Assembly: GCA_003427395.1 (NCBI GenBank)
Contig: BFEA01000011.1
Coordinates: 4,641,543-4,705,542 of the forward strand
Length of the DNA: 64,000 bases
Reading direction: 5' to 3'
Source: Chara braunii
Lineage: Eukaryota; Plantae; Charophyceae
The position numbers were made by a program, and so were the translations under genes. Of the stretch, positions 3,774-56,049 are shown in pieces (position 1 is the first letter of the stretch; every line of letters begins with the position of its first letter). The notes beneath the pieces were generated by a model. That model was not told where the DNA came from. It did no database searches and was given only the letters and a program-made list of their open reading frames with translations.

Positions 3774-6700
3774 ATGGCGATGGCCGTCCATTCACACCTG
3801 GTGGGGACGAGCGGCGCTGCGATTGGCTCAAGGGAGGCTAGTAGTAGATTCCATGTTTTCTGTGATTTCCACCTGCTGAGTGAAGGGGAAGGGCACACAA
3901 GGGTACCTTCAGTTCATGGATGCAGAAAGCAGCAACAGATCACCTGCCAATCTCCACGCTTTGTGAGATACGCTGCCGATCGTCCTGCATGCTGGCCGCA
4001 CACATCCGGTCTCCTCTTATGTGTTGGTAAGGATACCGGGGTTGGCAATCACATCGTCCGTCGACCACTTCAGCAATCAATCCTTCAACCGTTCTCTCAT
4101 CAGGCTTCACAGCCACCTTCGTCATCGTTGCTCTCGACATTGCCGTGGAAGTCCCACAAAGCATTTGATCGAAAAAAGTTTCGGGTTGCTGAGCTCGCTC
4201 ACTGCCTGTCTAGCTGTTGTCCATCTCCCCGTCCTCCTAATCGCTGCCATTTTCTTATGAAGTTGCAATTTCAGCGTCATCGCACTCAAGTCTCTGCAAA
4301 GCAAGTGGGTCATGGCCTCAAGCATTTCTTTTCCAGGACACGCCAATTGCGAATTGTGGAAGATCACCGAAATCTTGCATTTTCGGTCCATGGTGGTGGC
4401 TGCCCGAGAAGAAAGCGCTGCAGTGATGAAATGCAACAGTTTGTGGGTTCCATTCTTTTCCAAGGGCTATGTCAGGGACAGGACCTGGCGTTGCCAATGC
4501 ATACCGCTTCTAGCCCACCTTCATGTGCTCCTGGTTTGATGGCGAAGAGGAATGCCGTCCAAACAATTTTGGCTGAAGAGGCAGATGAAGTGGGTGAAGA
4601 CAGCTTGGCAGAAGGAGTTCCCGATGACTCCGAGGAGAGCATCAGAGAGCGCCTAATTCAGCTGCGAAACGGATCCTGGCCTCATGGTGCCTCGCTCGTT
4701 TTTCCCTCCTCCTTGAGCTCTGCGAAGCGGGCCTATGCACATGACCTTGCAGAACGCCTGGGCCTGCAGCACACAAGCGCGGGTAGTGCACCCAATAGGA
4801 GGCTCACGGTGAGGAGGCAAACTATCTCGGAACGGTTGCTAAGGCTCCAAGAAATGGTAGATGAAGAAGAAGCAGCTTCTCGGGCTCTGCTGAGCACAAC
4901 AGCCAGCCCTGCACAATCAGGGCAGATGCTAGAGTCACAAGGCTTGCTGCTTCGAGGAGCTGCTGTTCTAGAAAAGGAGGCGGCAGCATTTGGGAGAGAG
5001 AGGTGGGTTGTTGGCAAAGAGGGACCAGGAAGGGACCATACTCAGATGGAAAGCTTTCTACAGCGGGCCCGACCAGGCAGCAGCATCCGATTGGCCGTGA
5101 AGAACTCTGTCGGCGAGTATGTTGTAGCGGAAGGTCAGCCCGCTGGACGAGTGGCTTGGTCGAGGACGAATCGAATTTGCGTCATCTTTGATTCTCCGCC
5201 TGCTGAGGGGGATGACGAAGACGGTGCTGACACAAGGGGTAATAAACCTTCTGTGGGCTCTACGAGGAATAGCATCAGCATTCCGGGGGACAGCGTCAAT
5301 CTTCTGCTAGTCCCAGATAGTCTGACATTTGATCGATTCCGATCCACCCTCGCAGAATGCCAGCGGTCGGAAACAGAAGCGCAGGTGCAGAAGATGCTCT
5401 CTGCATTGCTCGGTACTTCACTTGATCTGGGAACTGATGCCAACATTGCGACGACTATCGGCAGCAAGTCTCCAGGGTTATTAGCACCACTTAGCTCCTT
5501 TTTTGATGAAAGTCTGAACGAGGAGCAGAGAAGGGCCGTAACGATGTGCGTAGATGGACCTCATTACGACAGTCCTTGTCCATCTCCGGTAGTCCTTGTT
5601 CACGGTCCATTTGGAACAGGCAAAACACGTACCCTTGTGGAGGTCATCCGCCAAAGAGTAGCCAACCAAGAGCGAGTGCTGGTCTGTGCTGCATCAAATG
5701 CAGCTGTGGATAACATTGCGCTTGCTCTGCTAGAGGCAGATCGCGACATCGGTTTGGCACGTGCTGGATTGACGGAGCGTGTTAACCCTCTGCTAGCTGC
5801 TCACACATTGGATTCCTTGCGCGAGAGTCAACCGGAGAGCGAGCTTGCACGGGAACTGAGGAAACAAGCGCATGCAGCTGCCGCTTCCGCTAAAAAGTGG
5901 ATTAGAGCAGCTGATGGTGGTCAGCGAAGGCGCGCCGCTCGCATGGAGGCCAACGCTTTATTCAAAGATGCGCGGAGGTTGGAGCGAGCAGCTTCCATTA
6001 CTGTTCTTCGACGCACATCAGTTCTCTGTGGGACTTTGACAGGGTTTGTGACCTCTCTCCATGACGTGGGCAGGCTGGACGATGGTGACTTGTCTCGCTT
6101 TGATTGTGTGGTGATTGACGAAGCCAGTCAGGCTACCACTCCCGCAGTGCTGATGACATTGCCATATATATGTCGGCGCGATCAAAGACAAACAGGAGGC
6201 ACTGGTGGTGGAGGAGGAGGAAGTGTAGAGAATCTCTCTCTTAGTTCTACGACCAGTGGGTCACGTCGTCCTCCTGGGGAGTGGCCAAGGCCCGTCATGA
6301 TCTTGGCTGGCGACCACAGGCAACTGCCACCAACTGTGATATCAGCTGATGTGCCTGGGCATGGTGGCGGCCTGGCGGCGACCCTCTTTGAAGAGCTTAT
6401 GGAGAGAGACGGGGGAGGTCTAGGGACCTGGAGTCTTGTTTACGGGGCGTCAGAGGTCAGGGAGGCAAAGGCGGTTAACGTGATGGAAATGGCTAAACAG
6501 GCAGCATTGTATGGAAGAGTGCATGGCTTACATGAGGAGAAAGGAGGCGAAGCGAGAAGAAAACAAAGAAGTGGGCGCATATCTTCTGCGCTGACCGTGC
6601 AATACCGGATGCCTGCCAGTCTAATGGCATTCCCTTCCGCAGCCTTTTATGGAGGATCATTAGTTGCAGGCGCTTCAACACAATCTCTTTCGTGCGTGGA

Positions 6701-7382
6701 CTGTGAGACTCTACGGAACAGAAGTGGGGACGGGTTACTGAGAAATGGGTGCTGGCTGGAAGTGATTGATACAGCAGGTGCAGGATATGAGGAAGAAACA
6801 TCGGGTGCCATCAAAAATTCAAGTAGGGATGGTGGTGCAAGGCAATCGCGAGACGGTGAGTCATTATCGACTTGCAATAGAAAGCAGGGAGAGTTGACGG
6901 CGCGCGTTGTTCAAGAGGTGATCGAATTTGGGCTTCTAGGCACGAGCCGGCGCGTAAATTTTGCAGACGTAGCAGTGGTCACACCGTACTCAGCTCAGGT
7001 GATGATTTTGAGGGAGATGCTGTCGCGAGCGGTTGCTGATGGTTTGGAAATCGATTCCATCGATGGTTTCCAAGGGAGAGAGAAGGCAGTTGTGATTCTT
7101 GACTGTGTGCGGAGCAACAATGACTCGAATGTAGGATTCTTATCAGATCACAGACGACTGAACGTCGCTATCAGCCGCGCTCGAAACAAGCTTGTCGTGA
7201 TTGGTGACTCTGCAACATTAGCTGTGGATCCTGTATGGAAACTATTCTATGATTGGGCATCTTTGTTTTCCAACCACGCTTGCAGGGGCATCGAGTCTGT
7301 TGTCTCTGAGGCTGGGAGTCATGAGACACAGCATTTTGCATACCGTTCTGTCTTCGAGTTGCCCCCTCCGGATGGATGGTGA
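3774..7382 (+). CDS. R3H-domain SF1B (Upf1/IGHMBP2/SMUBP-2-like) helicase, intron-free CDS; the real start could be later (e.g. ATG 4539)
   Basis: 1202-aa ORF. R3H motif FPSSLSSAKRAYAHDLAERLGLQHTSAG (~4700-4800), Q motif LNEEQ, Walker A GPFGTGKT (5604-5627), motif Ia AASNAAVDN, II DEASQ, III GDHRQLPP, QYRM, V DGFQGREK, VI RRLNVAISRAR. Confidence 0.92.
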   Translation: MAMAVHSHLVGTSGAAIGSREASSRFHVFCDFHLLSEGEGHTRVPSVHGCRKQQQITCQSPRFVRYAADRPACWPHTSGLLLCVGKDTGVGNHIVRRPLQQSILQPFSHQASQPPSSSLLSTLPWKSHKAFDRKKFRVAELAHCLSSCCPSPRPPNRCHFLMKLQFQRHRTQVSAKQVGHGLKHFFSRTRQLRIVEDHRNLAFSVHGGGCPRRKRCSDEMQQFVGSILFQGLCQGQDLALPMHTASSPPSCAPGLMAKRNAVQTILAEEADEVGEDSLAEGVPDDSEESIRERLIQLRNGSWPHGASLVFPSSLSSAKRAYAHDLAERLGLQHTSAGSAPNRRLTVRRQTISERLLRLQEMVDEEEAASRALLSTTASPAQSGQMLESQGLLLRGAAVLEKEAAAFGRERWVVGKEGPGRDHTQMESFLQRARPGSSIRLAVKNSVGEYVVAEGQPAGRVAWSRTNRICVIFDSPPAEGDDEDGADTRGNKPSVGSTRNSISIPGDSVNLLLVPDSLTFDRFRSTLAECQRSETEAQVQKMLSALLGTSLDLGTDANIATTIGSKSPGLLAPLSSFFDESLNEEQRRAVTMCVDGPHYDSPCPSPVVLVHGPFGTGKTRTLVEVIRQRVANQERVLVCAASNAAVDNIALALLEADRDIGLARAGLTERVNPLLAAHTLDSLRESQPESELARELRKQAHAAAASAKKWIRAADGGQRRRAARMEANALFKDARRLERAASITVLRRTSVLCGTLTGFVTSLHDVGRLDDGDLSRFDCVVIDEASQATTPAVLMTLPYICRRDQRQTGGTGGGGGGSVENLSLSSTTSGSRRPPGEWPRPVMILAGDHRQLPPTVISADVPGHGGGLAATLFEELMERDGGGLGTWSLVYGASEVREAKAVNVMEMAKQAALYGRVHGLHEEKGGEARRKQRSGRISSALTVQYRMPASLMAFPSAAFYGGSLVAGASTQSLSCVDCETLRNRSGDGLLRNGCWLEVIDTAGAGYEEETSGAIKNSSRDGGARQSRDGESLSTCNRKQGELTARVVQEVIEFGLLGTSRRVNFADVAVVTPYSAQVMILREMLSRAVADGLEIDSIDGFQGREKAVVILDCVRSNNDSNVGFLSDHRRLNVAISRARNKLVVIGDSATLAVDPVWKLFYDWASLFSNHACRGIESVVSEAGSHETQHFAYRSVFELPPPDGW

Positions 7383-18270: not shown

Positions 18271-18939
18271 GAAACAATTGTTAGCAGAAAAGAGCTTTCA
18301 ACCAGCCGACTGACGTTGCCTTGTTGACTGATAGAAGAGAGAGTGAGAGAGTTACAGTTAGGAGGGGGGGAAGGAGGGAGGGACGACGAGAAGCCGGGCG
18401 CTTGATGGAGAGTAAGGCGAGAGTACGGGACCCATCCTTCGAGACATCCGTTAAAATTGGAACGATACAGAGAAAGAAGATTAGCATCATCCCTGCGCAA
18501 GGATGACACGCATGAATCAAGAGAGTACTAGACCCCAAGAACGAACTACTCGTAGAGCTGAGTTTGGTTTTCGCTTCTGAAAAAGAGAGGATCATCGGTT
18601 CACCAGCCAAGTTGAGCGCATTTCTATTCGCCGAAAACGGTCTGTGAAAACAAATGAAAGGAAGAAAGAAGAAAACACATCGATGCAAGAAACTCGGTGG
18701 TAGAAATTTCTTATGTTTGTGCGTTTACGATACTACAGATGGTCTCCCACCAACGTCCACCATTGAGACATACATCGTGGATTTCTCGAAGTAGCTGGTG
18801 ATCCGTCCGCCATAAGTGGATGAAGCAAGAATGCTATGGCGGAACGAGGAGAAGAGGAGCGAGATATGGAGAGACTGGCCAAACAAGGAATCAAGGAAGG
18901 ACGGGGAAGGCGACTAGCCCGCTCGAGCGTTTTCTTGCT
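18271..18939 (+). repeat. ~0.7-kb repeat, copy A, carrying a U6 retrocopy
   Basis: Colinear with 20780-21504 from GAAACAATTGTTAGCAG to GCTCGAGCGTTT.TTGCT. Confidence 0.9.
18434..18524 (+). pseudogene. U6: 3'-truncated U6 snRNA retrocopy A
   Basis: GACATCCG.TAAAATTGGAACGATACAGAGA..AGATTAGCAT..CCCTGCGCAAGGATGACACGCA. No oligo-T terminator. Flanked by GAGAGTAC(GG/TA)GACCC direct repeats at 18419-18433 and 18521-18535. Confidence 0.9.
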
Positions 18940-19479: not shown

Positions 19480-19604
19480 GCGCACGCACGCACGCACGCA
19501 TGCATGCAAGGTTGGTGCACGTAAAGTCGACCACTTTATCAGGGGTATGGCTAACTCTGGGCGATGTGGTAAGTCCTTAATACATCAGTCAAATGAATCC
19601 TGGG

Positions 19605-19662
19605 CAGACTGTCGGGGTTCCAACCTCCTGATGAGCCGGTGAATTTCCGACGAAACAGTCTG
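19605..19662 (+). ncRNA. Type III hammerhead ribozyme with GUC cleavage site
   Basis: Stem III CAGACUG/CAGUCUG, GUC at 19611-19613, stem I GGGG/CCUC, CUGAUGA at 19628-19634, stem II GCCGG/CCGAC (one mismatch), GAAA at 19652-19655. Lies in a ~200-bp segment between two (CA)n tracts. Confidence 0.88.
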
Positions 19663-19701
19663 GCACAGTCATGCTTTTTTGAGTGTATAACGAATATGAC
19701 A

Positions 19702-19778
<77 letters not shown>

Positions 19779-20779: not shown

Positions 20780-21504
20780 GAAACAATTGTTAGCAGAAAA
20801 GAGCTTTCAACCAGCCGACTGACGTTGCCTTGCTGACTGATAGAAGAGAGAGTGAGAGAGTTACAGTTAGGAGCGAGGGAAGGAGGGAGGGACGACGAGA
20901 AGCCGCGCGCTTGATGGAGAGTAAGGAGAGAGTACGGGACCCGTCCTTCGAGACATCCGTTAAAATTGGAACGATACAGAGACCCTAGACAAGATTAGCA
21001 TCGTCCCTGCGCAAGGATGACACGCATGAATCGAGAGAGTACTAGAGAGTACTAGACCCCAAGAACGATCTACTCGTAGAGATGACTTCGGTTTTCGTCG
21101 GTTGTGGAAAAGAGAGGATCATCGGTTCACCAGCCAAGTTGAGCGCACTTCTATTCTCCGAAAACGGTCTGTGACAACAAACGAAAGGAAGAAAGAAGAA
21201 CACAAATCGATGCAAGAAAAAATCGATGCAAGAAACTCCGGAGTAGAAATTTCTTATGTTTGTGCGTTTATTTAAAAAAAAAAAAAAAAAAGGGCACTGC
21301 AGGTGGTCTCCCACCAGCGTCCACCGTTGAGACATACATCGTGGCTTTCTCGAAGCAGCTGGTGATCCGTCCGCCATAGCTGGATGAAGAAAGAAAGCTA
21401 TGGCTGAACGAGGAGAAGAGAGGAGCGAGACAAGGAGAGACTGGCCAAATGAGGAAGGAAGGACGGGGGAGGCGACTACGTAGCCCGCTCGAGCGTTTGT
21501 TGCT
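20780..21504 (+). repeat. ~0.7-kb repeat, copy B, carrying a U6 retrocopy
   Basis: Colinear with 18271-18939. Confidence 0.9.
20943..21036 (+). pseudogene. U6: 3'-truncated U6 snRNA retrocopy B with a 9-nt insertion at the ACAGAGA box
   Basis: GTCCTTCGAGACATCCGTTAAAATTGGAACGATACAGAG[ACCCTAGAC]AAGATTAGCATCGTCCCTGCGCAAGGATGACACGCA. Confidence 0.9.
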
Positions 21505-23833: not shown

Positions 23834-24345
23834 TTAAAGGCACGAGATTGAAACAGCCTGGAGGTTGGGGGAAGGGTAAAAGCCCCTCCCTCCCCTCAGC
23901 TCCCCAATTTTGGTTTTGCTCATGTTTGTCAACGTTACATGAGACTGAAGGAAGGGGCAGCAGCTTGAATTTGCATACACGTGAGCTAGCTTCTCGCCGC
24001 GAGCTAGCTTCTCGCCACGAGCTAGCTTCTCGCCTGCCTGCTTTGCGCTAACTTCTTTCTTCACTCCTTTTCCTCCTCCATGCAAACTCTTTCTTCCCTC
24101 TACTGGTGTGAGTCCGTCGTAATTTTCATCCTTTTGAAGCCTCGCCCATCCGGCGCCCGAGAGGTCCAGGGCATACATGGCTAGTGTAGCGCTATCCGCT
24201 AAGATGTGTTGCACTCTGAAGTAGGTAAAAAAAGAAGAAGAAAATGAAATATTCACTTTACTAAGAAATAGATTATATTGTATAAGAAATATATATATCG
24301 TCAAATAGATATATATGTATATATGTCTTTACTCATTTATAACTA

Positions 24346-24925: not shown

Positions 24926-25164
24926 TAGTATAAGTTTTTTCAAGCTTGTGATATCAAAAATTGTTTTTCGTGCACGCATCTTAAGTTTTATCGATAGTCA
25001 CTTTTGTTCTCCTAAATTGATTTTGTATATGACTTTATTTTCTCTAGAGAGTTACAATGATCTATAATTAAAGGTACTTCTTGTTTGTTCTCTGTAAAAT
25101 ATTTGTTTGGACGAGGAGTACCAAATACATCATATGCTAAACCAGTAAGCTCTCGATCAAAAAC

Positions 25165-25202
25165 CTGTCTCTTATACACATCTAGATGTGTATAAGAGAC
25201 AG
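25165..25202. other. Nextera mate-pair junction adapter (assembly artefact)
   Basis: Exact CTGTCTCTTATACACATCT+AGATGTGTATAAGAGACAG, between two copies of a ~133-bp segment (25032-25164 and 25203-25335). Confidence 0.98.
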
Positions 25203-25484
25203 ACTTTATTTTCTCTAGAGAGTTACAATGATCTATAATTAAAGGTACTTCTTGTTTGTTCTCTGTAAAATATTTGTTTGGACGAGGAGTACCAAATACA
25301 TCATATGATAAACCAGTAAGCTCTCGATCAAAAACACACTTGAACAAATGACTGCGAAAATAGCGATCGTTATGAAATCTTTTGAAATTCAAAGAGACTC
25401 AAACGACGCCTTCGGCGCCTTCGGTCGGGGACCCGGCTCTTGCGAGCCCTTTGGCACGCGTCCCCGGGTTTTGGGGTAGTAAAT

Positions 25485-25703
25485 GGTTAGATCACCCGCG
25501 TTCGTTCAGGTCCATAGACAATGACAATAGCCTTAAAAAGACTTGCTTTCGCTATGGCTCCGGTGGATAATTTCCCTTAACCAAGCCACTGCCTATGAGT
25601 CGCCGGCTCATTCTTCAACAAGCACGCGGTCAAAGATACAATTCTCCTCCCACTGCTTGAAGGCCTACGGGCTACGGTTTCATGTTTTCTTTCACTCCCC
25701 TAT

Positions 25704-25736
<33 letters not shown>

Positions 25737-25813
25737 TTTCGCTATCGGTTACCCAGGAGTATTTAGCCTTACGAGGTGGTCCTTGCAAATTCACTTAGGA
25801 TTTCCCGTGTCCC
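25485..25813 (-). pseudogene. rrn23: Plastid-type 23S rRNA fragment (nuclear insert)
   Basis: CCCTTAACCAAGCCACTGCCTATGAGTCGCCGGCTCATTCTTCAACA and TTCCCTCACGGTACT...GCTATCGGT.ACCCAGGAGTATTTAGCCTT match the antisense strand of chloroplast 23S. Confidence 0.88.
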
Positions 25814-35922: not shown

Positions 35923-37475
35923 TTCTGCTGTTCACCGGCCGGTCCTCTTCCACGCAATTGAGCGGAAAAGTCAGCCTGCAGTCACGACACCACACAATAC
36001 ACACACACACAAACGAGCACGTAGCGGCAGACATTTTCATCATTAAGAGCGCAATCGGAAAGATGTACACCATCATTTTACAAACGCGAAAAAACACCAA
36101 CGAGTTAATTAACGACTTCTCATCGTCCACCAACCAAAAACATCTTCAGAAACAAAAAATATATAGCCAAACAGCACACGAAAGCCGCGAAAGATAGTAC
36201 TTCATTTCGTATCTTTCGATTCACGTCTTTTGTCCTGAACAGTATATCAGCATGCTGGTTAAACAGCGCCGACTCTTATACTGTTCCACATTTCCCTAAT
36301 CTGTACCGCAAGCAACCCGACCTTGAATTGTTACATATTTCCCTCGCCTGCGGCCACACCCTCACCATACAATCGATCAACGTCCAACAAATACGATACA
36401 CGACTGTCTGGGCACTGCTGATGATCATTTCACTCCACCACCGCCGGCACCATAACCTTACCCTCGACTGATCGCGGACAAGCTCAACTCGTCGGTGTTG
36501 CACTTCTCGCTCAGATACCATCCAAGCAGCCAGCTCTCTACCATCGTCGAAGATCGGTTGTAGATTTTGGACGCTCGGTAGTCTTAACTAGAACATCTTC
36601 TCACCCCAACTCCTCTTTGAACGACAAAAACATTCATCACGGTCCAACCAATCGGGGTAGCCAACGCGTGCGGTTGTGAAATAGCACCTACTGCTTGCCG
36701 ACCGCGAGAGCTCGATCGTTAGACGGCCACCGAGGACTGCGACACCGACAAGAGCACGGCGCACACAAAGCAATCGGCGCGACACACAGAACAAGCAGCG
36801 TCCAAGTTGTACTACTTACTACGCCCACCGATAAAAATTAGACAGACAGGACAGTGAGGGAAGAAGACCGACTACCTGCCATTGAGTGCGTCCTTGCGCT
36901 ACCGATAAAAATTAGACAGGACAGCGGGGAAAGAAGACCGGCTATCTGCCAACGAGTGCGTCATCTCACCGTCCTTTCCCCACTAATAAGCGGGAATACC
37001 TAAATAACGTTACGATAAGGAACCCCCGCCGACTCCTTGGATATTGCGACACATGTGAAAGCGAATTCAACAGAAAGCCGCCCTCGACGGTCACGTAAGC
37101 GAGGACCCTTCTGTCTGTCTGTTCTCCTGATCTGGATCGCTGATGGCTCGGCAACCAATCAATCGCTCGGCGCGCAGTTCCCCGCCAGAAGTCCATACCT
37201 AAATCGGCAAGTTAGGAAGGAGGGTGAGGAGGAGAAGTGCCACATCCAAGTCCCGTCAAAGAAACAACCTAATGTTTTCATCACCGCGTCATTACTACCC
37301 TTCTTCAGTTAAAACCCTAAAATCACTACACACCGTCAACCCCTTCACCATCCCAAGAAAGTGGTATATAGAATCACCATTTCATTTCCGCACTCTCGTG
37401 TTAGCTCCCTTCCGCCATCTCCTTTTCAGGTTACTATCGAACGCCTACCTCCGTTCCTCAGGCTTTCGCGACAAT

Positions 37476-37945
37476 ACCATTCCTCCACCCTTCGGGACCA
37501 CCATTACTCCATCCCTTCGGGACCACCATTCCTCCACCCCTTCGGGACCACCATTCCTCCATCCCTCGGGACCACCAATCCTCCATCCCTCGGGACCACC
37601 AATCCTCCACCTCTCGGGGCCACCATTCCTTCCCTCGGGACCACCATTCCTCCACCCCTCGGGACCACCAATCCTCCACCCCTCGGGACCACCATTGCTC
37701 CACCCCTCGGGACCACCATTCCTCCACCCCTCGGGACCACCATTCCTCCACCCCTCGGGACCACCATTCCTCCACCCCTCGGGACCACCATTNNNNNNNN
37801 NNNNNNNNNNNNNNNNNNNNNNNNNNNNNNNNNNNNNNNNNNNNNNNNNNNNNNNNNNNNNNNNNNNNNNNNNNNNNCATTCCTCCACCCCTCGGGACTA
37901 TAGCATTCCTCCACCCCTCGGGACCACCATTCCTCCACCCTTCGA
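37476..37945. repeat. 24-bp minisatellite (spans an N gap)
   Basis: (CCACCATTCCTCCACCCCTCGGGA)n. Confidence 0.95.
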
Positions 37946-37995
37946 AACCACAACTCGTTGCTTCGCACCTTTCTTTTCACATCAATCAAATCGAA

Positions 37996-38066
37996 GGCTA
38001 AGAAATATAAAGGTAATGTATTGGACTGCAAATCCACGAACGATGGTTCGAATCCGTCCTTAGCCT
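37996..38066 (+). tRNA. trnC: Mitochondrial-type tRNA-Cys(GCA), probable nuclear insert (NUMT)
   Basis: Acceptor stem GGCTAAG/CTTAGCC, anticodon loop CTGCAAA, T-loop GGTTCGAATCC. Resembles plant mitochondrial trnC. Followed by CCA at 38067-38069. Confidence 0.82.
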
Positions 38067-40953: not shown

Positions 40954-43248
40954 TTATGACTTTTTACCCCATCAGGGCGACGATTTCACTTATGCCCCTA
41001 TATGATTTTTGTCACGTTGGTTGGTTGGTTGGTATCATCACATCCCTTCACCTTTCTAGCTTGGTAATGATGAACGACAATAATTATCTTTGTTTCCCAA
41101 AAGGAAGTTGAAGAAATAACTATTACAACCAAATGAAAGACTTTTATCATATTCCAATGAATGAGGGTTTCGGTACTGTATTTGGCACAGGGTTCAATCA
41201 TTTCATTTTTTTGTTGTTTCTATCACATGAGTTTTAACTTCGATAGTTTGCACCAATATTAGGTTAGTTGTAGCTAGCAAGTCTAGTCAGAGACCGATTA
41301 TACTTGACCCCATTTGTTTATTTTGTTGGTTGGATGGGTATCTTATTAGTTTGTCGACAGTTAGTTTTCTACCCATATGTTGGGTGGATACGTTTTTAGA
41401 TATATGACCCTTCGTATATCGATTATATGCATTTATTTTATTAAATATATTGTTTCCAACATCATATCCAATATCAAACAATAAATTTTCATTGGTTTTG
41501 TTCAGTTTATCAAGGTAGATCAACGAATATTTATTATATGCATACTTCAATGTTAGTTATAACTTTATTTTACACCTGCACTCACATTTTATTGTACTAT
41601 AGGTTCAATGCATACATGTTCATGACTTTCATAGCTTCCGCTTAATTGCATGTTTTCTTACTACATTAGTATTGGAACGGTTCGGTCATTGCCATCAGTT
41701 TTTGTCGTTGCACTAAGTAATTTTGAATGGGTTATGATTTATTGTTCGTTCGTAACGTTTGAATATCTTAACGTCATTATCTAGGTTTGTATTGATCAAT
41801 CGATAGTCATCTTAGTGTTTTTTGTTTTCCATTTTACACTATTTAAAGTTATGTTTTTGATGGTTTGGTATTTATGGTGTATTATGTTTCTATTCACTGC
41901 CAAGTTTGTAGCCTAACTGGTTTCGTAGCCCACAACGTAGCTTGGAGGTCAACTTACAGTCAAGTTTGCAGTCAACTTCAAACTGCAGTCAAAATAATAA
42001 CCACACTAATAACTAAGTTCGTAGCTAAGTTCATATTTTAGCTTTAGCTAAACATATATCAACCTTTACCAACCCTCAACCTGCCTTAAAAGATCTCCCC
42101 AGACCCTCTATATAAATACTAACTCCACTCCTCTTATTTTATTATGCCCTCCTCCTCTCATTTTTTATCTCCCTCTACTCTAGTTATGATATCCTTACCA
42201 CATCATACAAGTAATTTCACTCGATATTCTATGTATTTCGATCCAATATCACAAAGCTTGTTCGTTTTCTTTCCTCATTCTTTTATTTAAATCCTCATCT
42301 CTCATATTATACCAGGTAACATAAGAAAACTCTTTAATATTTTATCATTTTTTTTCCTTCATTATTTATTTTTCTTCTCCCTTTATGATAACCATTAACT
42401 ATTTACTTGATTTTTTTCATTTTTGTTTCTCTTTTATCCAACACTTTTAAAATTACAGTCATTAAGAAGAGGTAGTTAAGTATGGATGTGGTCAACTTTT
42501 TACATTTTGATGTGCATCGCTCACGATTAGGTAGTATAGACCCCATGAGTTGGGGATTCCGGTAATCCGTATAAAAAACGTTTCTGACTTATCATGACCC
42601 CTTAATAAGAAACCAAGTAAGAGAAAACATTGCATAGACTTGGAGGGTTGAGAAACAATGAGAACAACAGAGGTAGGAAGGGGGGAGCGGAGGGGTGGGG
42701 GGAAAAATAGCTTTATGGGGGAAAGGGGCAATGGATCTGGGGAGGGCGGTGGGGTGAGGGAGAGAGTCAGAGAAAGGGGGAGTTGCAGAATAATCGGGTG
42801 AAGTGTTCGCAAGGGAGTTATCGAGCCGAGGAGACAAAGGAAAAGTTGCGAGGACAAAGGATATAGAGTTAGGGGGAAGGAGTTTTTCTTCTTTGGGAGG
42901 TGGTGAACTTGCAGGGAGGTGATGTAACGGTCACCTAGTCCTGCCAAAGTGGAGGGGGTGACAAGATGTGGATACGGCTCCTGACACCCTCCCCACCGCC
43001 AACTCCGTTCTCTGAGTTCGTCACCTTCCGATGCTTGTTGGACTCGATACCTACCTATGCCTCTTTGTTGCTCGAGCTTGTTGTGTTTTATGGAATACAT
43101 ACAATGTTTCCAACCCGTACATAGGGAGGTACCCGAGCCGACCTCCGTACGAACAGGCATTCAGGGTCCCGTTCGGGGTCCGAACCTGAAGGGGTTCGGG
43201 CCCCGCTATAAATTATCTCAACGTCCATATATATATATATATATATAT

Positions 43249-43448
43249 GTAGAGTTTTCCATCTGGTGTGGGTGAGTGATAGTCTACCTTGATTTTGGTT
43301 AAGGGAGATTATCATTTACAGTGTAATCAGTGAGGGGATTCTGCAGACTGTTGAGGGTTCAGCCTCCTGATGAGTCGGTGAAACTCCGACGAAACAGTTT
43401 GTCACAGCCCCTCGTTTGTTGTCCTCTTCTCTCTCTCTGCCTACGGTT
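43249..43448 (+). mobile_element. Hammerhead-bearing element, longest (TA)n-type copy, ending at an N
   Basis: Starts right after (TA)n. The 5' part is homologous to 52738-52800 (-); the 3' part to 47454-47562 (-) and 53758-53862 (+). Confidence 0.82.
43344..43401 (+). ncRNA. Type III hammerhead ribozyme (GUU site in this copy)
   Basis: Stem III CAGACUG/CAGUUUG, GUU at 43350-43352, stem I GAGG/CCUC with loop GUUCAG, CUGAUGA at 43367-43373, stem II GUCGG/CCGAC with loop UGAAACU, GAAA at 43391-43394. Confidence 0.88.
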
Positions 43449-43709
43449 NCCCCCCCCTTTCGTCGCCCTCAGTTATAGTAGTACGTGCCATATGCATCGA
43501 TGACCTCTTTTGTTCAAACTCATGCCCTCTTCTTTTATCTCTACTTCCTATAAATAAATGAGAGTGAGGAAAAGACAATTCGCAATAAATTTCCATAAGG
43601 TTTCTATGCCGAATCAATGTGTAACCTGCTCAACTAGTACCTTTTTTGCTTCTATGAGATGAACAATGTTTCACTACAACATTTATCAAGAGCGAGGACC
43701 CTCCGTTAA

Positions 43710-47011: not shown

Positions 47012-47453
47012 GCAAAAAAAAAAAATAGAGAAAAAAATTATTTTTATTTTTAAATTGGATTGCAGAAGTACAAACTTGCTATTCAATTACATCATGTTAT
47101 GTTAAGAGTCAACGAACATTTACCACCTCGTGTTTTGTTTAACATGCAAAGTCATGAATATTGAATAAAGTAAATATCTTTGCATATGAGGAGGGTGTTA
47201 GAGAATAGGTAAAAAAATAGAACGTGATGAATTTCCTCAAGAAAATAAATATCTTTTTCAATAAATTAAAATATCACTTTTTTTATAAAACCAATATGTA
47301 TAAAGCTTTAAAACAACTTATAATTATAAACAACCATTTCGTTCAAATAAACATTTTACAATTTTTTTAATAAAAATCAAACTGACTTCTTTGCTAAGCT
47401 ACCAAAGTGGCCCGGGGTCACTTGCCAGACCGGGCCAAAATATATATATATAT

Positions 47454-47562
47454 CGTAAAATAGAACTGCCCGGTAAACCGTAGGCAGAGAGGGAGAAGAG
47501 GACAACAAATGAGGGGCTGTGACAAACTGTTTCGTCGGAGTTTCACCGACTCATCAGGAGGC
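47454..47562 (-). mobile_element. 5'-truncated hammerhead element with intact 3' end, inside (TA)n
   Basis: Reverse complement: GCCTCCTGATGAGTCGGTGAAACTCCGACGAAACAGTTTG...GGGCAGTTCTATTTTACG(AT)n. TA tracts on both sides. Confidence 0.85.
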
Positions 47563-48077
47563 TATATATATATATATATTGTGAGCTCTCTATGATGTAA
47601 GGTACATGTCTATAAATTTTGAAATCATTTGCAAATCAAAATAAAACAAAAGTCGACAAAGATAGAGGTTTCAAAATAAGCTCGCCTAATCACTATTTTT
47701 ATTTTTTCACTTTTTACTTTTTTTCACATTATTTCAGGGCCTAAACAATTTTATTATTTTTTGTATTTTTTTTCATGAGTTTTGTATTGTGTGAAGTACA
47801 CATTTGTAAATTTTCAGGGCATTTGGCTATGCAAAAAAAAATAAAATTGTGAAAGATTGCGGTCTCGAAAAACTAGTTATTGAAGATCATGAAAATTTAA
47901 TGTGTAAAGTTGTCAACCATATACTTCATATGAATTAGTTGAGCAAGATAGGACATGAGGCGAAAGACGAAAAAAAATATGGGTCTACTTATGGCAATAT
48001 TGTTTTTTAGCTTTATGATTGCTGGGCGTAAAGTCTTTGAGGATCCTATTCATTGATACAAAGTATTCAACTACAGT

Positions 48078-48941
48078 CAGGGTTACCTGACCGAACGTTC
48101 GGGGGCCCCCGGGCTGGCCCCCGAACGTTTGGGCGTTCGGGGTCCCGTTCGGGGGCCGAACACCTCCAGGTTCGGCCCCCGCCAAAAACTATTTCGGGGC
48201 CTAAAACTAAGTTTTGTTTTTTGAATTTTTTTTTGTGAGTTCTCTATGATGTAACCTACACGCCTTTAAATTTTGAAGCTATTCTGCTGAGTCAAAATAA
48301 CATTAAAAATCTTCAAAGATGGGGGTGTCAAAACGTGCTCGCCCACTCACTATTTTGTTTTTTTTCACTTTTAACTTTTTGTTTTCACTTTATTTCGGGG
48401 CCTAAAAAAATTTATTATTTTTTGAAAAAAAATTACCCACTCACTATTTTGTTTTTTTTCACTTTTAACTTTTTGTTTTCACTTTATTTCGGGGCCTAAA
48501 AAAATCTATTATTTTTTGAAAATTTTTTAATGAGTTAATGATTATGCAAGCTACATATCTGTAAATTTTCAGGGCATTTGTCAATGTCAAAAACTAATTA
48601 AAAATCGGCAAAGATGGCAGTGTCGAAAAGGTGTTGGCACACTCACTCATTTTAATTCTCTTTTTATTTTTTCTTATTTTTATCATAGTGTTTATTTTCT
48701 GTAATGGATTTTTAATTCAAATTTGGTAAAGAATTTGTACGTAATTCCCAAGCAAATGTTGTTTAGTTTATGTTTCTCCATAACAGAGTTTTGTTTCGGA
48801 ATTGTTTTTTAACTTTTTTGTTTTTCTTTTTTTTTTTCTTTTTTGGTCCGCGTTCGGCTCGAACGACCGAACGCCTCCTGAAGGGGTCCCGTACGTTCGG
48901 GCGTTCGGGCGTTCGGTCCGTCCCGAACGCTGGTAACCCTG
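48078..48941. mobile_element. Complete non-autonomous hAT element
   Basis: TIR CAGGGTTACC/GGTAACCCTG, 8-bp TSD ACTACAGT at 48070-48077 and 48942-48949, many CCGAAC/GTTCGG subterminal repeats. Confidence 0.93.
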
Positions 48942-50342
48942 ACTACAGTCATATTTGAGGTTCAATTTCGTTACAACTTTAGCTAAGATGTCAGTCATAT
49001 TACTCTTGACCCATCCCTCTCCTGCCCTCCTCTTCTTGTCTCCGTTTTTTTTTTTTTTTTTTTTCAAAGCATAGTTAGACTTTGTTCACATCTTTCTCAT
49101 TGCTAAATAGGATGAATATAGAGGGTGAATAAACGTGTAAGAGGTGAGAGTAGAAGAGTATAAGAATGAATGACAAGAGATAAAAAAAAAAAAAAGAAAA
49201 AAAAAAAAGGTAGGATGAGTAGAACCAAAAAAAAGTAAGTAATTGGTTTACAATAAAAATGCGTTGTCGATTACACCAATCCCATATACAGATCTCGGGC
49301 TATGTTATGCAGAATTTTGGCAGTCGAGATACAAAGTGTACAGGAGCAATATTGCTCCGACTGAGAGCGTCAACTATACCCTCCTCGAGTTCCTACAACA
49401 AGATAGGACCTCACGAGGTACAACTTATCTGCATTTGTGGGAGTTGTTATCATCTTTGGGCGGACGTATCCCCATCGAGGTACTGGTGCACTTGCAAAAG
49501 CTTTAACATAGAGCCGCAGAGGTGAATCAACTGAGGACGTTTTTCGTTCACTGTAGCATAAGGGGTATGTGCGGTCACTCCCTAATCGAGCCCGCGCGCA
49601 TCTTCTTACTCTAGGGGGCGTTAATCTCCTCAACATGAATCTAAGCTGGTTAACTAGGACGTTCAGTTAACCATGTGACTCACTTCCGAAATAAAACGAA
49701 GAGCAAGCGTTATGCCTAGTCGGTTTTTAACTTCCAAAACCCATAATTTACACCTCGTACGAGCGATAAGCTACTGCTTACGAGAAATCATATAAACGAA
49801 GTGGCCATGAATATTAACCATATATGGCTATGCGATCCACCGTTATGGCCAAGTTTTATGCGTTACCATAATTGTGTGCCCCCTTGTGGATGTCAGGGTT
49901 GCACACGACACTCAGATATCGACTAATAAGCGCTTTGGGGGTTAACTCCTGGGCGCTGAACGGCTGAGCTAGTGGTTGTAGACTCTTTTATCTCTCACTC
50001 TTGGCGAGGAAAATTTATGAGAGTTGCAAGGCGGTAGGAGGTCTTTGATAGTCAACAGATAACAGTCTTGACTTCCTATCACAGCCACTCTCGTTTAACT
50101 ATAAAACCAATGAGTATGGAAATATGTCTCCTATCGCTACAACCTCAATGATCTCAGTGTGTAGTGAAGGGCACAACTAGCTACTCAGGCTGGATGGACT
50201 CGACTCCTTTTTAGCGCTCTATTAATCGATTTTGCAAGTTTGAAAGAAAGAAATAAAAAATTCAGATGGAAAAATAAAATCAAGTTAAATAAGAAAATGA
50301 AATAAGATAAAATTTGAACGTGATATATGAAAATGTGCCTAC

Positions 50343-50724
50343 ACTACCACTCTCCCCGAATATATCTTTCGTCAATCAGGCGCAAAGATTGATTCTGGAT
50401 ACTTACCGACTTCCACCACCCGAGTTGAACACCTAACCGCTGCCCTGCAATCCCATGGGCAGGGGCCATGCTAATCTTCGCTGTACCGTTGCAATTTTCG
50501 TGAATGTCGTGAAGGACCAGGTTGAGGGTCACGCTACACTACCACTCTCCCTGAATATATCTTTCTACAATCAGACGCAAAACTTGATTCTGGATACTTA
50601 CCGACTTCAACCACCTGACTTGAACACCTAACCGCTGCCCTGCAATCCCTTGGGCAGGCGTCATACCAATCTTCTCTGTATCGTTGGAATTTTCGTGAAT
50701 GTCGTGAAGGACAAGGTTGAGGGC
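50343..50724. repeat. ~190-bp tandem duplication
   Basis: ACTACCACTCTCCC.GAATATATCTTTC...GTCGTGAAGGAC.AGGTTGAGGG twice. Confidence 0.88.
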
Positions 50725-52399: not shown

Positions 52400-52913
52400 A
52401 CAGGGTCACTAACCCGTACGTATGGAGGTCCCCGGACAGACCTCCGTATGTACGGGCGTTCGGGGTCCCGTACGGGGTCCGAACCCGACGGCGTTCGGCC
52501 CCCGCCAAAAATTATTTCGGGGCCTCAAGATAATTATTTTTTTCTGAATGATTTTTTGTGAGTTCTCTATGACGTGAGGTACAAGCCTGAAAATTTTCAA
52601 GTCATTTGGCTAATCCAAATAAGAATTAAAAATCGCGAAAGATGACGGTGTCAAAACGTGCTCGCCCACGTATTTTTTCACTTCTTACTTTTTGTTTTCA
52701 CTTTAGTTCGGGGTCTAAACAATTTTATTAATTTTTNAATCCACCTTAACCAAAATCAAAGTAGACTATCACTCACCCACACCAGATGGAAAACTCTATA
52801 GACTGTCGGTTCACACCCCATCACAAGCCAGCAAAACACCCACGAAACAAAGAAAGGTCTGTCACAGCCAAAAGATACACATATTTATATATATATATAT
52901 ATATATATATCGT

Positions 52914-52954
<41 letters not shown>

Positions 52955-52955
52955 T

Positions 52956-52992
<37 letters not shown>

Positions 52993-53738
52993 TTATACAC
53001 AAGGTGACCGGTGTTCGGGACGGGCCGAACGCCGAAACGTACGGGACCCCTTGGGTATGCGTTCGGTCATTCGTCCCAACGTTGACCAAAAAAAAAAAAA
53101 AACTTGAAAAATCTAAAAACAACATATGTTATGCAAAACGATAAAATAAACAACATTTGCCTGAGCATTACATCCAAATTCGTTACCAAATTTGAAATAA
53201 AAATAAAATAGGGAAATTAAATACTAATAAGAAAAATAAAAAAAAATAAAAGAAGAAATTAGAGAATTGAAATTAGTGAGTGTACAAGCCCGTTTTCGAC
53301 ACCACCATCCTTGGCGATTTTTCATTTTTTTTTGGCATATCCAAATGCCCTGCAAATTTATTTGTGTGTAGTTCAGATGATTAACAACGCATGAAAAAAA
53401 GTTCAAAAAATAATAAAATTGTTTAGACTCTGAAAAAGAGTGAAAACAAAAAGTAAGAAATGGAGAAAAAAAAAATTTGAGTGGGCAAGCACGTTTTGAC
53501 GCCTCCATCTTTGGAGATTTTTCATGTTTTTGTGAATAAGCAAAATGAATTCAAAATTTTTAGGCAAGTACCTCACTTCCTAAAGAACTTACAAAAAACA
53601 AATCAGAAAAAAAAAAAATTTTTAAGTGCCGAAATAATTTTTGGCGGGGGCCGAACCCCTTAAGGTCCGGCCCCCGAACGGGACCCCGAACGCCCGAACG
53701 TACGGAGGTCCGCCCGGGGGCCTCCATACGTACGGGCC
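52400..53738. mobile_element. Two partial hAT copies of the 48078 family (52400-52736; 53000-53738 inverted)
   Basis: CAGGGTCACT and CAAGGTGACC termini, CCGAAC repeats, shared internal sequence. Confidence 0.8.
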
Positions 53739-53757
53739 TATATATATATATATACAT

Positions 53758-53955
53758 AGGGTTCAACCTCCTGATGGGTCGGTGAAACTCCGACGAAACA
53801 GTTTGTCACAGCCCCTCGTTTGTTGTCCTCTTCTCCCTCCCTGCCTACGGTTTACCGGGCAGTTCTGCCCGGTAAACCGTAGGCATAGAGAGAGAAGAGG
53901 ACTACAAACGAGGGGCTGTGACAAACTGTTTCGTAGGAGTTTCACCGACTCATCA
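53758..53955. mobile_element. Fold-back pair of hammerhead-element copies inside (TA)n
   Basis: + copy AGGGTTCAACCTCCTGATGGGTCGG... joined at GGGCAG-TT-CTGCCC (centre 53863-53864) to its reverse complement ending ...CCGACTCATCA. Confidence 0.88.
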
Positions 53956-56049
53956 CGATATATATATAAATTTAATGACGAATTTCAATGTGACCCTACG
54001 ACAAAAGATGTTCAGTTTATTTTTCTGCATAACATAGTTTTTTTTCGGATTTTTTGAATTTAGTTTTTTTTTGGGGGGGGGACCTTCTTCCTTGGGCCTT
54101 GCACGGGCTGACCACCCAGGACCCAGGTGGCCCGACAATCAGCCTAAATTCTTTGGCAAAAAAAAAGTTATAATTTTTTAGCTTATTAAGGTTGAAAACA
54201 TTACCCTGAGTAGCTAAAATTGCTACATTGTTTTGACAAAATAATTCAAGTTGAATTTAAGTAAAAAAATATAAATGTCAATATTAATAAAATATATATA
54301 TAGGTAAAAAACATTGAACTTTTGTTAATGCCCTGTTCAAAGAGATTGGTAAAATCATGTAACCACCGACATTGAATGTCAAAGATGATTGAGGATTTTA
54401 TGTCAACTTTAGGTTCCTAGCAGAACCCATTAGATTATAACTAGTAAAGGAAACAAAGTTTTGTGAGTACGACTGCAGGTAGTGTGGAGATTGAACTCTG
54501 CGAAAAAAAAAAAAACGATTGTATAAATTTGATAAATATATGCATAGGCAACAAAGAGGAACAAATATAAAAGTTATATTCAGATACAAAAAACAAGACC
54601 ATCTCGTAGTTATATGTGATAATGTAACCATAGAGAGATGATATATCAAGGAAAACAAGAGAGGCATAAAGGTTAGTAGCATCTCAGTGAAAAGATATGC
54701 CATTGTTATAGCGGTCGATCAGAGAGGCTATGGTAAAAAAAAAAAAAAAAAACAGATGCTAAGAAAGTTTAAAATTCATCCTAGCATAGCCTTAGGTGAG
54801 CTATGGAGAAATTAAAATAGTTGAGGAAGTATAATAAGATTGCATGGATAAGGGTAAATGACTTAAGTATGGTATTCAGGAACACATTATTGCATGTTGT
54901 CCCTTGATCCGAAACCGAAAAGGGAACAACTAGTAGGAATAGCATCTGCTCTTATTGAGCTTGATGGTGCAAATGAGGTGGTACCATAACTTCTCTTCGA
55001 CCCTCGAACTCTTATGGAAGATCATGTTCTTTTTTTTCCACCTCACCTTGCCTTGAGTATGTTATATGTTTTATCTCAATTGATGATCGCTTGGCAAACT
55101 TGGATAACTAATAAGATAACTAAGTTCATAGGTTAAACAAGTAAGAAAGACTGTTTGATAGTAATAGATATTAAAAACAATCGGGACAAGAGTAAACGTT
55201 TAAGCAAATAGAGGATTTGCAATATAATGTATCTTTGAAAAAACATAAAAGAGATTGCACTTATCAAGGAATTGTCGACCTCTATCAAATTTGTCATTGC
55301 GATAAGTATGTCATTATAGTTTTTCACTATTTGGACTGAGACAAATATTATTTCCATATAGAAGTAGGATTTTTTTTTCACTTTTTCTTTGTGGAAAGAA
55401 ATACTTGACTTTATTGAGGATATGCGAAGGGTACGAGGAACCCTACCCCGACATCGAGTACAAAGACCTCACAGACCCCTTATTCTATGCAAAAAGTACT
55501 CGGTCAATGTAAGGACTGACAGAAAGAACGTACCGGTATGACATAAATGTATAATATACTACTGAAATAATACCATGCAACGAGAGTCCTAATGGACTGA
55601 TCTATAGAATGTCCCCTTTATACTTTGATGATTTAGAAAGCCGTAACTTTAGTAGAGTCACAAAAACGAGTTCTAATTGCACTATGAGGCAAAATAGAAT
55701 TTGCAATTGTACTTCAAACACCATTAAGGACAAAAAAATTAGGTTATATACGTTGCTCGAACTGCAATTCGAAGTTGTAGCTTGGCCCATAGTGCAATTA
55801 CTATAACTCATTTATGTGACTCTCGCATAGTTTCTCATTTAGAAAATAACCCAAAATCTTACAAACAAAGGTTAAATGAATCATAGTTCTTCGCTTTATG
55901 GTGCACCATGCCTAAGAAAAGAAGTGAACTCAAAGTATGCATATATCACTGGCGACTCTCTAGGTTGCATTCAAATCAAATACCCAATAGATAGGATTAA
56001 CTGTGTATGTAATCTGACTAAGTTTCCCTCCAAACTGTGTGTGGACGCT

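Follow-up and report, generated by a model that had tools for sequence, protein, structure and literature searches.

The closest described systems are the Chlamys Penelope-like elements, for which three types with very high copy numbers were reported from the charophyte alga Chara braunii (Craig et al. 2021, PMC8557442). One of them, Chlamys-2_cBra, carries a 'canonical 3'-HHR' (hammerhead ribozyme) as well as a gag-like open reading frame (ORF), and another, PLE-X-like type is also HHR-bearing. According to the same work, Chlamys elements show frequent 5' truncation, tandem and inverted insertions and a bias towards microsatellites, with no discernible target-site duplication (TSD), and their non-autonomous derivatives share 3' ends with autonomous families. 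Chlamys elements are said there to target (CA)n and (C)n, and Naiads to target (TA)n. What the hammerhead does in Penelope-like elements is still described as unclear (PMC8557442, PMC7761336). Here we describe a short non-coding repeat unit with a type III hammerhead ribozyme, copies of which are located in a 64,000-nt stretch of C. braunii DNA (GenBank assembly GCA_003427395.1, contig BFEA01000011.1, positions 4,641,543 to 4,705,542), referred to below as the window and numbered from its first nucleotide.

Other hammerhead-bearing elements also serve for comparison. Plant LTR retrozymes possess two direct long terminal repeats (LTRs) of ~350 bp, each with a type III hammerhead, 600-1000 nt apart, as well as a tRNA-Met primer-binding site (PBS), a polypurine tract (PPT) and a 4-bp TSD (Cervera et al. 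2016, PMC4918200); the origin of their ribozymes is open, and horizontal transfer has been proposed (PMC7761336). Metazoan non-LTR retrozymes are short non-coding hammerhead repeats without LTR, PBS or PPT (Cervera and de la Pena 2020, PMC7229834; Li et al. 2026 preprint), in which type I hammerheads occur in regular tandem arrays of 150-400-nt units that give rise to circular RNAs (PMC7229834). They are thought to be non-autonomous derivatives of Penelope-like pseudo-LTRs (PMC7229834; bioRxiv 10.64898/2026.07.22.740005). The hammerheads of animal Penelope-like elements and Terminons are minimal type I ribozymes lacking helix III and loop-loop contacts, many of them dimeric, and in Athena/Terminons the ribozyme stands beside a short repeat matching the insertion target (PMC7761336, which summarises Cervera and de la Pena 2014, Lunse et al. 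2017 and Arkhipova et al. 2017).

The units found in the window are interpreted here, with a probability of about 0.6, as copies, retroposed and in most cases shortened from the 5' side, of a non-coding module that forms the 3' terminus of a Penelope-like family of the Chlamys type, or of a non-autonomous derivative sharing that end. The module might thus be either the 3' untranslated region or pseudo-LTR of an autonomous element, or part of a non-autonomous derivative with a shared end. This interpretation is suggested by the anatomy of the copies: a fixed 3' end combined with nested 5' truncations is the signature of target-primed reverse transcription, and, together with tandem and inverted arrangements and microsatellite targets without a TSD, it corresponds to the anatomy of Penelope-like elements. 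The ribozyme is represented in the window by the following features (a slash marks the predicted cut):

43345-43400, forward strand: type III hammerhead (RF00008 match; minimum-energy fold)
43352-43353, forward strand: predicted self-cleavage site GUU/G (from the sequence and the variants among family reads)
19606-19661, forward strand: type III hammerhead of a second subfamily, predicted site GUC/G, core intact, one C.A mismatch in stem II (RF00008 match)

A complete type III hammerhead had been proposed at 43344-43401 in an initial annotation of this DNA, and both the covariance model and the predicted fold bear it out. In an Infernal search (cmscan), the Rfam model Hammerhead_3 (RF00008) matched 43345-43400 with 45.8 bits (E 7.8e-7, model positions 1-54 covered) and 19606-19661 with 42.7 bits (E 5.7e-6), the latter also over its full length. 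Both scores are slightly below the curated gathering score of 48.5, at which a default Rfam scan reports no hammerhead, and both matches were recovered with an E-value threshold only; the E-values are far beyond chance. In the first ribozyme, stem III (AGACUGU/ACAGUUU) is open and the cut is predicted after GUU, between 43352 and 43353 (43350-43353 being GUU/G), while stem I (GAGG/CCUC) is capped by the loop GUUCAG, stem II (GUCGG/CCGAC) by the loop UGAAACU, and the core consists of CUGAUGA at 43367-43373 and GAAA at 43390-43393. The minimum-energy fold of 43343-43402 is the hammerhead three-way junction with helices I and II loop-capped and helix III open (RNAfold, -22.2 kcal/mol, z -2.9). 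The core pattern CTGATGA-N(10-30)-GAAAC occurs three times in the window, against 0.24 expected. The letters of loops I and II are complementary (UUCA/UGAA), which may permit a contact between them, and the second subfamily keeps only UUC/GAA of it. No exact match to the ribozyme turned up when prokaryotic genomes and viral contigs were scanned.

The two subfamilies are identical at all 13 of 13 core positions; the cleavage nucleotide changes from U to C, and the differences are mostly located in the loops. Alignment of the three full ribozymes left 90.7% of the stem cells paired, as compared to 37-51% when the partners were slid. The ribozyme is the only segment common to both subfamilies, the flanks and the target repeats being different. 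Since it is the sole module shared by subfamilies with such different surroundings, and its core is unchanged, the sequence comparison argues that the hammerhead may be retained for a function. Among the reads of the family, position 43352 varies to C and A (that is, H), both of which are compatible with a hammerhead, with no G listed, and the other ribozyme positions show no variant, at a reporting threshold of 10 reads in 100.

Copies of the unit were located by blastn of the region against the window and by alignment, and their lengths differ through unequal 5' truncation; the shortest pieces were found by pattern search:

43226-43249, no strand: (TA)n tract bordering copy A on its 5' side (sequence)
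43250-43448, forward strand: copy A, intact ribozyme, 103 nt upstream of the cleavage site (blastn, alignment)
47447-47563, reverse strand: copy B, 98% identical to A, starting in loop I, ribozyme dead (blastn, alignment)
52738-52880, reverse strand: copy D, element 5' region only (blastn for 52738-52798, extended to 52880 by comparison with the outside contig L001, described below)
53758-53866, forward strand: copy C1, 96% identical to A, starting 1-2 nt past the cleavage site (blastn, alignment)
53867-53958, reverse strand: copy C2, inverted, 5'-truncated inside CUGAUGA and followed by CG(AT)n (blastn, alignment)
19509-19702, forward strand: copy of the second subfamily, boundaries approximate (blastn, alignment)
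24291-24310, reverse strand: imperfect TA tract with a 10-nt stub of the element 3' end (CTATTTGACG) at 24301-24310 (pattern search)
52886-52986, no strand: long (TA)n tract with two stubs of the element's last 7 nt (pattern search)

Copy A is the only one in the window with an intact ribozyme. Both A and D end at a single N (43449 and 52737, respectively), which are assembly joins and not natural ends, and the 3' part of A is lost there; D extends ~85 nt farther upstream than A and has (TA)n at its 5' junction. The 3' end of copy B is complete (...GGGCAGTTCTATTTTACG followed by (AT)n), and (TA)n is present on both sides of this copy (47440-47453 and 47563-47579). Copy C1 is preceded by (TA)n at 53739-53757, has CUGAUGA mutated to CUGAUGG, and ends at GGGCAGTTCT, where it is joined tail-to-tail to C2 around GGGCAG-TT-CTGCCC. 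The stubs in the long tract read TTTGACG and TTTAACG on the reverse strand, and their ends lie at 52903-52913 and 52945-52955. With A, the 19.6-kb copy has only the ribozyme in common (19604-19668, 85% identity over 65 nt); it is preceded by (GCAC)n/(GCAT)n and followed by (CA)n at 19703-19776. Of the ~12 copies examined, one begins at the cleavage site.

Both arms of the C1/C2 pair (53758-53958) lack the element's last ~10 nt, and its structure points to a switch of template or a fold-back at GGGCAG while the cDNA was being made. The resulting hairpin falsely matches the Rfam microRNA precursor MIR6426, with 55 bits where the gathering score is 96. Another side observation is that the element's last 16 nt (47447-47462 on the reverse strand; GCAGTTCTGTTTGACG in the family consensus) resemble 14 nt across the cleavage site (GCAGACTGTTGAGG, 43343-43356 on the forward strand), and pairing would be possible between CUGUUU of the tail and AAACAG of helix III. 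The likeness may be what remains of a partial ribozyme downstream or of a pseudo-LTR boundary, or it may be a matter of chance.

Every copy of the first subfamily abuts (TA)n, and the 19.6-kb copy abuts (CA)n. All five perfect (TA)n tracts of at least six repeats in the window, occupying 169 nt of 64,000, touch a copy, and the junction of the element end with a tract, ACGATATATAT, occurs five times, stub junctions included, compared to 0 expected (none in 100 shuffles). No clear TSD was seen at the hammerhead copies. Hence the location of the copies at or near dinucleotide microsatellites, as claimed initially, is strongly marked in the window, and it is strong across the family reads as well. 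The copies named in the same annotation (47454-47562, 53758-53955, 52738-52800 and a diverged one at 19605-19662) were all recovered by blastn and alignment. Its description of variable 5' ends and a fixed 3' end holds as well, with the correction that the 3' end taken from copy B is a variant of the family end, which is ...GGGCAGTTCTGTTTGACG(AT)n and is uniform.

The abundance of the family was assessed in public sequence reads, of which four runs were compared with 43250-43600. The unit is present in the public runs of a single organism as well as in a (meta)transcriptome from a rice paddy and several from soil, and as many as 14,670 DNA contigs match it, making it a very abundant family. 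The DNA depth climbs steadily from 5' to 3', from 0.37M to 3.7M, as expected for 5' truncation, while the unique flank past the N at 43449 has a depth of 10. The loose ends past 43448 agree on a single consensus, TACCGGGCAGTTCTGTTTGACG and then ATATAT, which is supported by 194 DNA contigs and by 1847 raw RNA reads, and the same end was found in 49 and 10 contigs of two RNA-type runs. Among the 5' junctions listed for DNA contigs, the best supported is at 43354, 1 nt past the cleavage site (49 contigs, (TA)n upstream), the next being 43363 (37 contigs). Of the tandem joints listed, about half have their restart within 43353-43358. The sequence downstream of the second subfamily is a loose end in 56 DNA contigs, and this subfamily is abundant too.

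The only related outside contig found, L001, comes from a metagenome and was identified by a match to a 24-nt word from the 5' part of the unit. From its 5' end, it contains a hAT-like MITE (miniature inverted-repeat transposable element) end with (TA)n/(GATA)n, a reversed 30-nt copy consisting of the tail only, a copy that is truncated at the 5' end and complete at the 3' end and whose ribozyme is decayed, then a short spacer of AT, and a second copy, which reaches ~195 nt farther upstream than A and is broken by another MITE. The two successive copies form a partial tandem. This contig extends the unit to ~420 nt or more, with stops in all frames, and the added 5' sequence has no match in the window.

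The propagation of the element might proceed as follows. A sense transcript would be made, and an endonuclease encoded by the element would nick a (TA)n tract or, for the second subfamily, a (CA)n tract. Reverse transcription primed at the nick would start at the fixed RNA 3' end, ...GGGCAGTTCTGTTTGACG, possibly aided by AU/TA pairing, and its frequent abortion would produce a nested series ranging from 7-10-nt stubs up to copies of more than 400 nt. New copies would enter the TA tracts of older ones, building stacks, partial tandems and inverted pairs; the partial tandem of L001 and the inverted pair C1/C2 are arrangements described for Penelope-like elements, and tandem joints occur in the reads. 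The type III hammerhead, located ~117 nt from the 3' end, may cut the RNA at its predicted site, so that cDNAs made from cut RNA would begin there, like copy C1 and the commonest listed 5' junction of the DNA contigs. In a partial tandem, the cut would set the 5' end of the element RNA. Copy C1, the 43354 junction and the tandem restarts at 43353-43358 fit reverse transcription of cut RNA, and are suggestive only of a contribution of ribozyme cleavage to the 5' ends of the copies.

The unit and the Chlamys elements of C. braunii are alike in their host, copy number, 3'-proximal hammerhead, 5' truncation, tandem and inverted insertions, and microsatellite location without a TSD. They differ in that none of the copies described here carries a reverse transcriptase (RT), GIY-YIG or gag-like ORF, whereas the Chlamys clade is defined by an ORF with a Penelope-type RT, an N-terminal GIY-YIG endonuclease and a CxC motif, and in that the reported (CA)n target is shared by the second subfamily but not by the first, which is found in (TA)n. 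The copies of the window are very probably decayed fragments of a family already catalogued. The initial interpretation, in which a self-cleaving RNA is retroposed at (TA)n/(CA)n through target-primed reverse transcription and the family is not recognised as a described one, stands as regards the type III motif, the non-LTR target-primed anatomy and the tie to these microsatellites. Its claim of novelty is only partly supported, and that the combination is undescribed is not supported, since HHR-bearing, microsatellite-biased Chlamys elements of C. braunii were already published by Craig et al. (2021).

With plant LTR retrozymes, the unit shares a type III ribozyme near the Hammerhead_3 gathering threshold, a non-coding nature and the green lineage. 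Their LTRs, second ribozyme, tRNA-Met PBS, PPT and TSD have no counterpart here: no flanking direct repeats were found around the copies, the two ribozymes of the window are 24 kb apart, and a search for a tRNA-Met PBS and a PPT gave a sole near-match to the PBS, at 36509, which is unrelated and at chance level. A plant-type LTR retrozyme, with no LTR, PBS or second ribozyme nearby, was therefore rejected, in agreement with the first description of the unit as having no terminal inverted repeat (TIR), LTR, PBS or ORF; indeed, no TIR was detected either. Both the 5' truncation and the microsatellite location point to target-primed rather than LTR-type (Gypsy-mobilised) reverse transcription. 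Metazoan non-LTR retrozymes resemble the unit in being short, non-coding and without LTR, PBS or PPT, and differ from it in the ribozyme, which is here a classical type III with a 7-9-bp helix III, and in the copies, which are here mostly dispersed and truncated. Unlike the arrays of metazoan retrozymes, the tandem units start past the cleavage site and contain no complete ribozyme. Animal Penelope-like elements and Terminons have their hammerhead in the terminal repeat region of a GIY-YIG/RT lineage, which is a point of likeness, but compared to them the ribozyme of the unit is of type III, looks monomeric and has all its helices and loops in full.

Several observations weigh against assigning the copies to a Chlamys-type family. 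A Pfam search of the 144 ORFs of at least 97 aa in the window revealed no RT or GIY-YIG domain, and there is none in L001, so that the copies can be at most non-coding parts or derivatives of such an element, and the link to a Penelope-like enzyme is drawn from anatomy and the literature. The extension of the unit in the 5' direction, proposed at the outset as a way to reach an autonomous partner, arrived at none: at least ~420 nt at the 3' end are non-coding, and an open frame of the element, translated and sought among gene calls in protein databases, gave no candidate. The unit was likened to Chlamys by its anatomy and by the published description, and the main text of PMC8557442 does not give the ribozyme type; membership in a particular Chlamys family would thus be a conjecture from shared features. 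The (TA)n preference departs from the (CA)n and (C)n stated for Chlamys by Craig et al., and the tail-to-tail pair C1/C2 differs from the inverted copy described for Penelope-like elements, which is adjacent to the 5' end. Likewise, the three ribozyme sequences contain no compensatory pair changes and four one-sided ones, and the DNA depth rises smoothly, with no sharp step at the cleavage site, next to which the junctions neighbouring 43354 are nearly as common.

The element is transcribed, which counts in favour of the preferred interpretation; as far as cleavage is concerned, the RNA data belong to the opposing side of the balance. In a raw oligo-dT RNA run the element is covered on both strands, the first mate being ~4 times more frequent on the minus strand, which would mean mostly sense RNA if the library is of the usual stranded kind. 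In RNA-type runs, the depth past the cleavage site is 9-25 times that before it, the corresponding factor in DNA being ~2. The increase extends across 43346-43393, where loose ends at 43358, 43361, 43363 and 43381 continue into flanks rich in TA. This RNA is for the most part read-through of truncated genomic copies, and since transcripts reading from the flanks into such copies account for the rise, the RNA depth step was rejected as evidence of cleavage. Nor was there a pile-up of read starts at 43353 in the oligo-dT run, a size-selected library that is poorly suited to capturing the 117-nt cleavage product.

One alternative is a 'non-LTR retrozyme' of the green lineage that would be independent and non-autonomous. 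It would possess a promoter of its own, be cut by the hammerhead, possibly be circularised, be copied in trans by some RT, and share no sequence with an autonomous element. The non-coding sequence of at least ~420 nt upstream of the 3' end, the very high copy number (14,670 DNA contigs), the roughly fourfold strand bias of the RNA reads and the head-to-tail joints in RNA-type contigs, several of which restart at 43353-43358, are all in line with it, and for its animal counterparts an origin from Penelope-like elements is now argued (bioRxiv 10.64898/2026.07.22.740005). The structure of the joints tells otherwise: the head-to-tail units start past the site and lack the 5' strand of stem III, which does not allow excision by the hammerhead or formation of circles, and most of them have a (TA)n spacer, as serial insertion predicts. 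The reading of these joints as circular RNA was rejected on this account, and by their sequence they are serial insertions rather than self-excising units. There is also no second ribozyme within 24 kb of copy A. We consider an independent retrozyme a doubtful explanation, though the most credible of the alternatives. The hammerhead could instead be a passenger of an ordinary retroposed repeat, the copies starting at the site being products of random truncation or of RT stops at a stable structure. The smooth DNA depth, in which the step beside the site is only ~25%, the junctions at 43358, 43361, 43363 and 43381, which are about as frequent as 43354, and the absence of an RNA 5'-end pile-up at 43353 would all follow from it, and Craig et al. 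suggest that HHRs may merely parasitise Penelope-like elements (PMC8557442). Against it, the ribozyme alone is common to two subfamilies with different flanks and targets, its catalytic core is untouched, and its position 17 has no listed G variant among thousands of copies, which makes a mere passenger unlikely.

A repeat spread at the DNA level, i.e. a satellite or segmental duplication arising by microsatellite recombination, or a DNA transposon or Helitron carrying the hammerhead, would explain why the copies are located in repeat-rich, AT-rich DNA beside hAT-like MITEs, and short-read assembly joins do cut two of them. Recombination does not, however, predict one fixed end with nested truncations down to 7-nt stubs, the flanks of the copies are unrelated, and no TIR, TSD or hairpin/CTRR end is present at the copies, so that this origin appears highly improbable. 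A DNA transposon or Helitron was rejected for the hammerhead unit, which has no TIR or TSD, the adjacent GC-rich hairpin repeat (43112-43219) being a separate hAT-like MITE.

Within the preferred interpretation, that of a Penelope-like 3' module, a streptophyte alga, closely related to land plants, harbours a target-primed element that inserts into (TA)n and has a classical type III hammerhead with full helices. Such an element usefully links the hammerheads of Penelope-like elements to those of plant retrozymes. It lets one ask whether cleavage sets the 5' end of the retrotransposition template, and whether the ribozymes of plant retrozymes were inherited from such algal elements. A more far-reaching idea, which we regard as improbable but worth stating, is that of a distinct non-autonomous streptophyte-alga element, in which the type III hammerhead, a kind otherwise typical of land-plant LTR retrozymes and viroid-like RNAs, would set the 5' end of the template and a telomerase-related enzyme of the Penelope type would copy the last nucleotides repeatedly into (TA)n. 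If so, the element would build and extend its own TA tracts, each tract of the window holding a copy or a 7-10-nt stub, and would represent a vertical, pre-land-plant source for the type III ribozymes of plant retrozymes.

Among the neighbouring features of the window, the hAT-like MITE is represented by a ~870-bp copy at 48072-48950, with the TIR CAGGGTTACC..., the 8-bp TSD ACTACAGT, GC-rich subterminal repeats of the CGAACG type and an AT-rich interior. Partial copies are located at 43112-43219, 47579-47871, 52401-52739 and 53000-53736, as well as at positions 222-365 and 977-1100 of L001. A hAT-like MITE adjoins every hammerhead copy of the (TA)n subfamily, both in the window and in L001, and the TA tracts seem to be landing sites common to the MITE and the hammerhead element, or to arise at MITE ends.

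Four copies resembling U6 small nuclear RNA were found at 18429-18537 and 20943-21051 (forward strand) and at 50418-50517 and 50613-50712 (reverse strand), scoring 60.9, 57.2, 43.6 and 38.3 bits, respectively. All four contain small insertions and are without a U-tail. Two direct repeats (18271-18932 and 20780-21498), 85% identical to each other, hold the first two copies and flank the (CA)n-subfamily hammerhead copy, and the last two lie within a 190-nt tandem. These may be U6-carrying repeats rather than genes.

The helicase and the plastid-derived psbE/rps3 pieces are the only Pfam matches among the ORFs searched. The former is an intronless 1202-aa ORF at 3774-7382 (forward strand) with R3H and superfamily-1 helicase (AAA_11/AAA_12) domains, of the SMUBP-2/IGHMBP2 type, and no gene with exactly this product is on record. 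Plastid-derived pieces are located at 25015-25398 and 25513-25806 (both on the reverse strand), to which an rps3/KH ORF is to be added. In all, a duplicated psbE lumenal domain, pieces of 23S rRNA and rps3 occur in an AT-rich stretch; this stretch looks like a nuclear insertion of plastid DNA, which fits a green-lineage nuclear genome. A tandem array with units of ~70-100 nt, at 37466-37965 and 37996-38066, is broken by an 85-N gap and is located directly upstream of a tRNA-like sequence with the anticodon GCA (55.5 bits).

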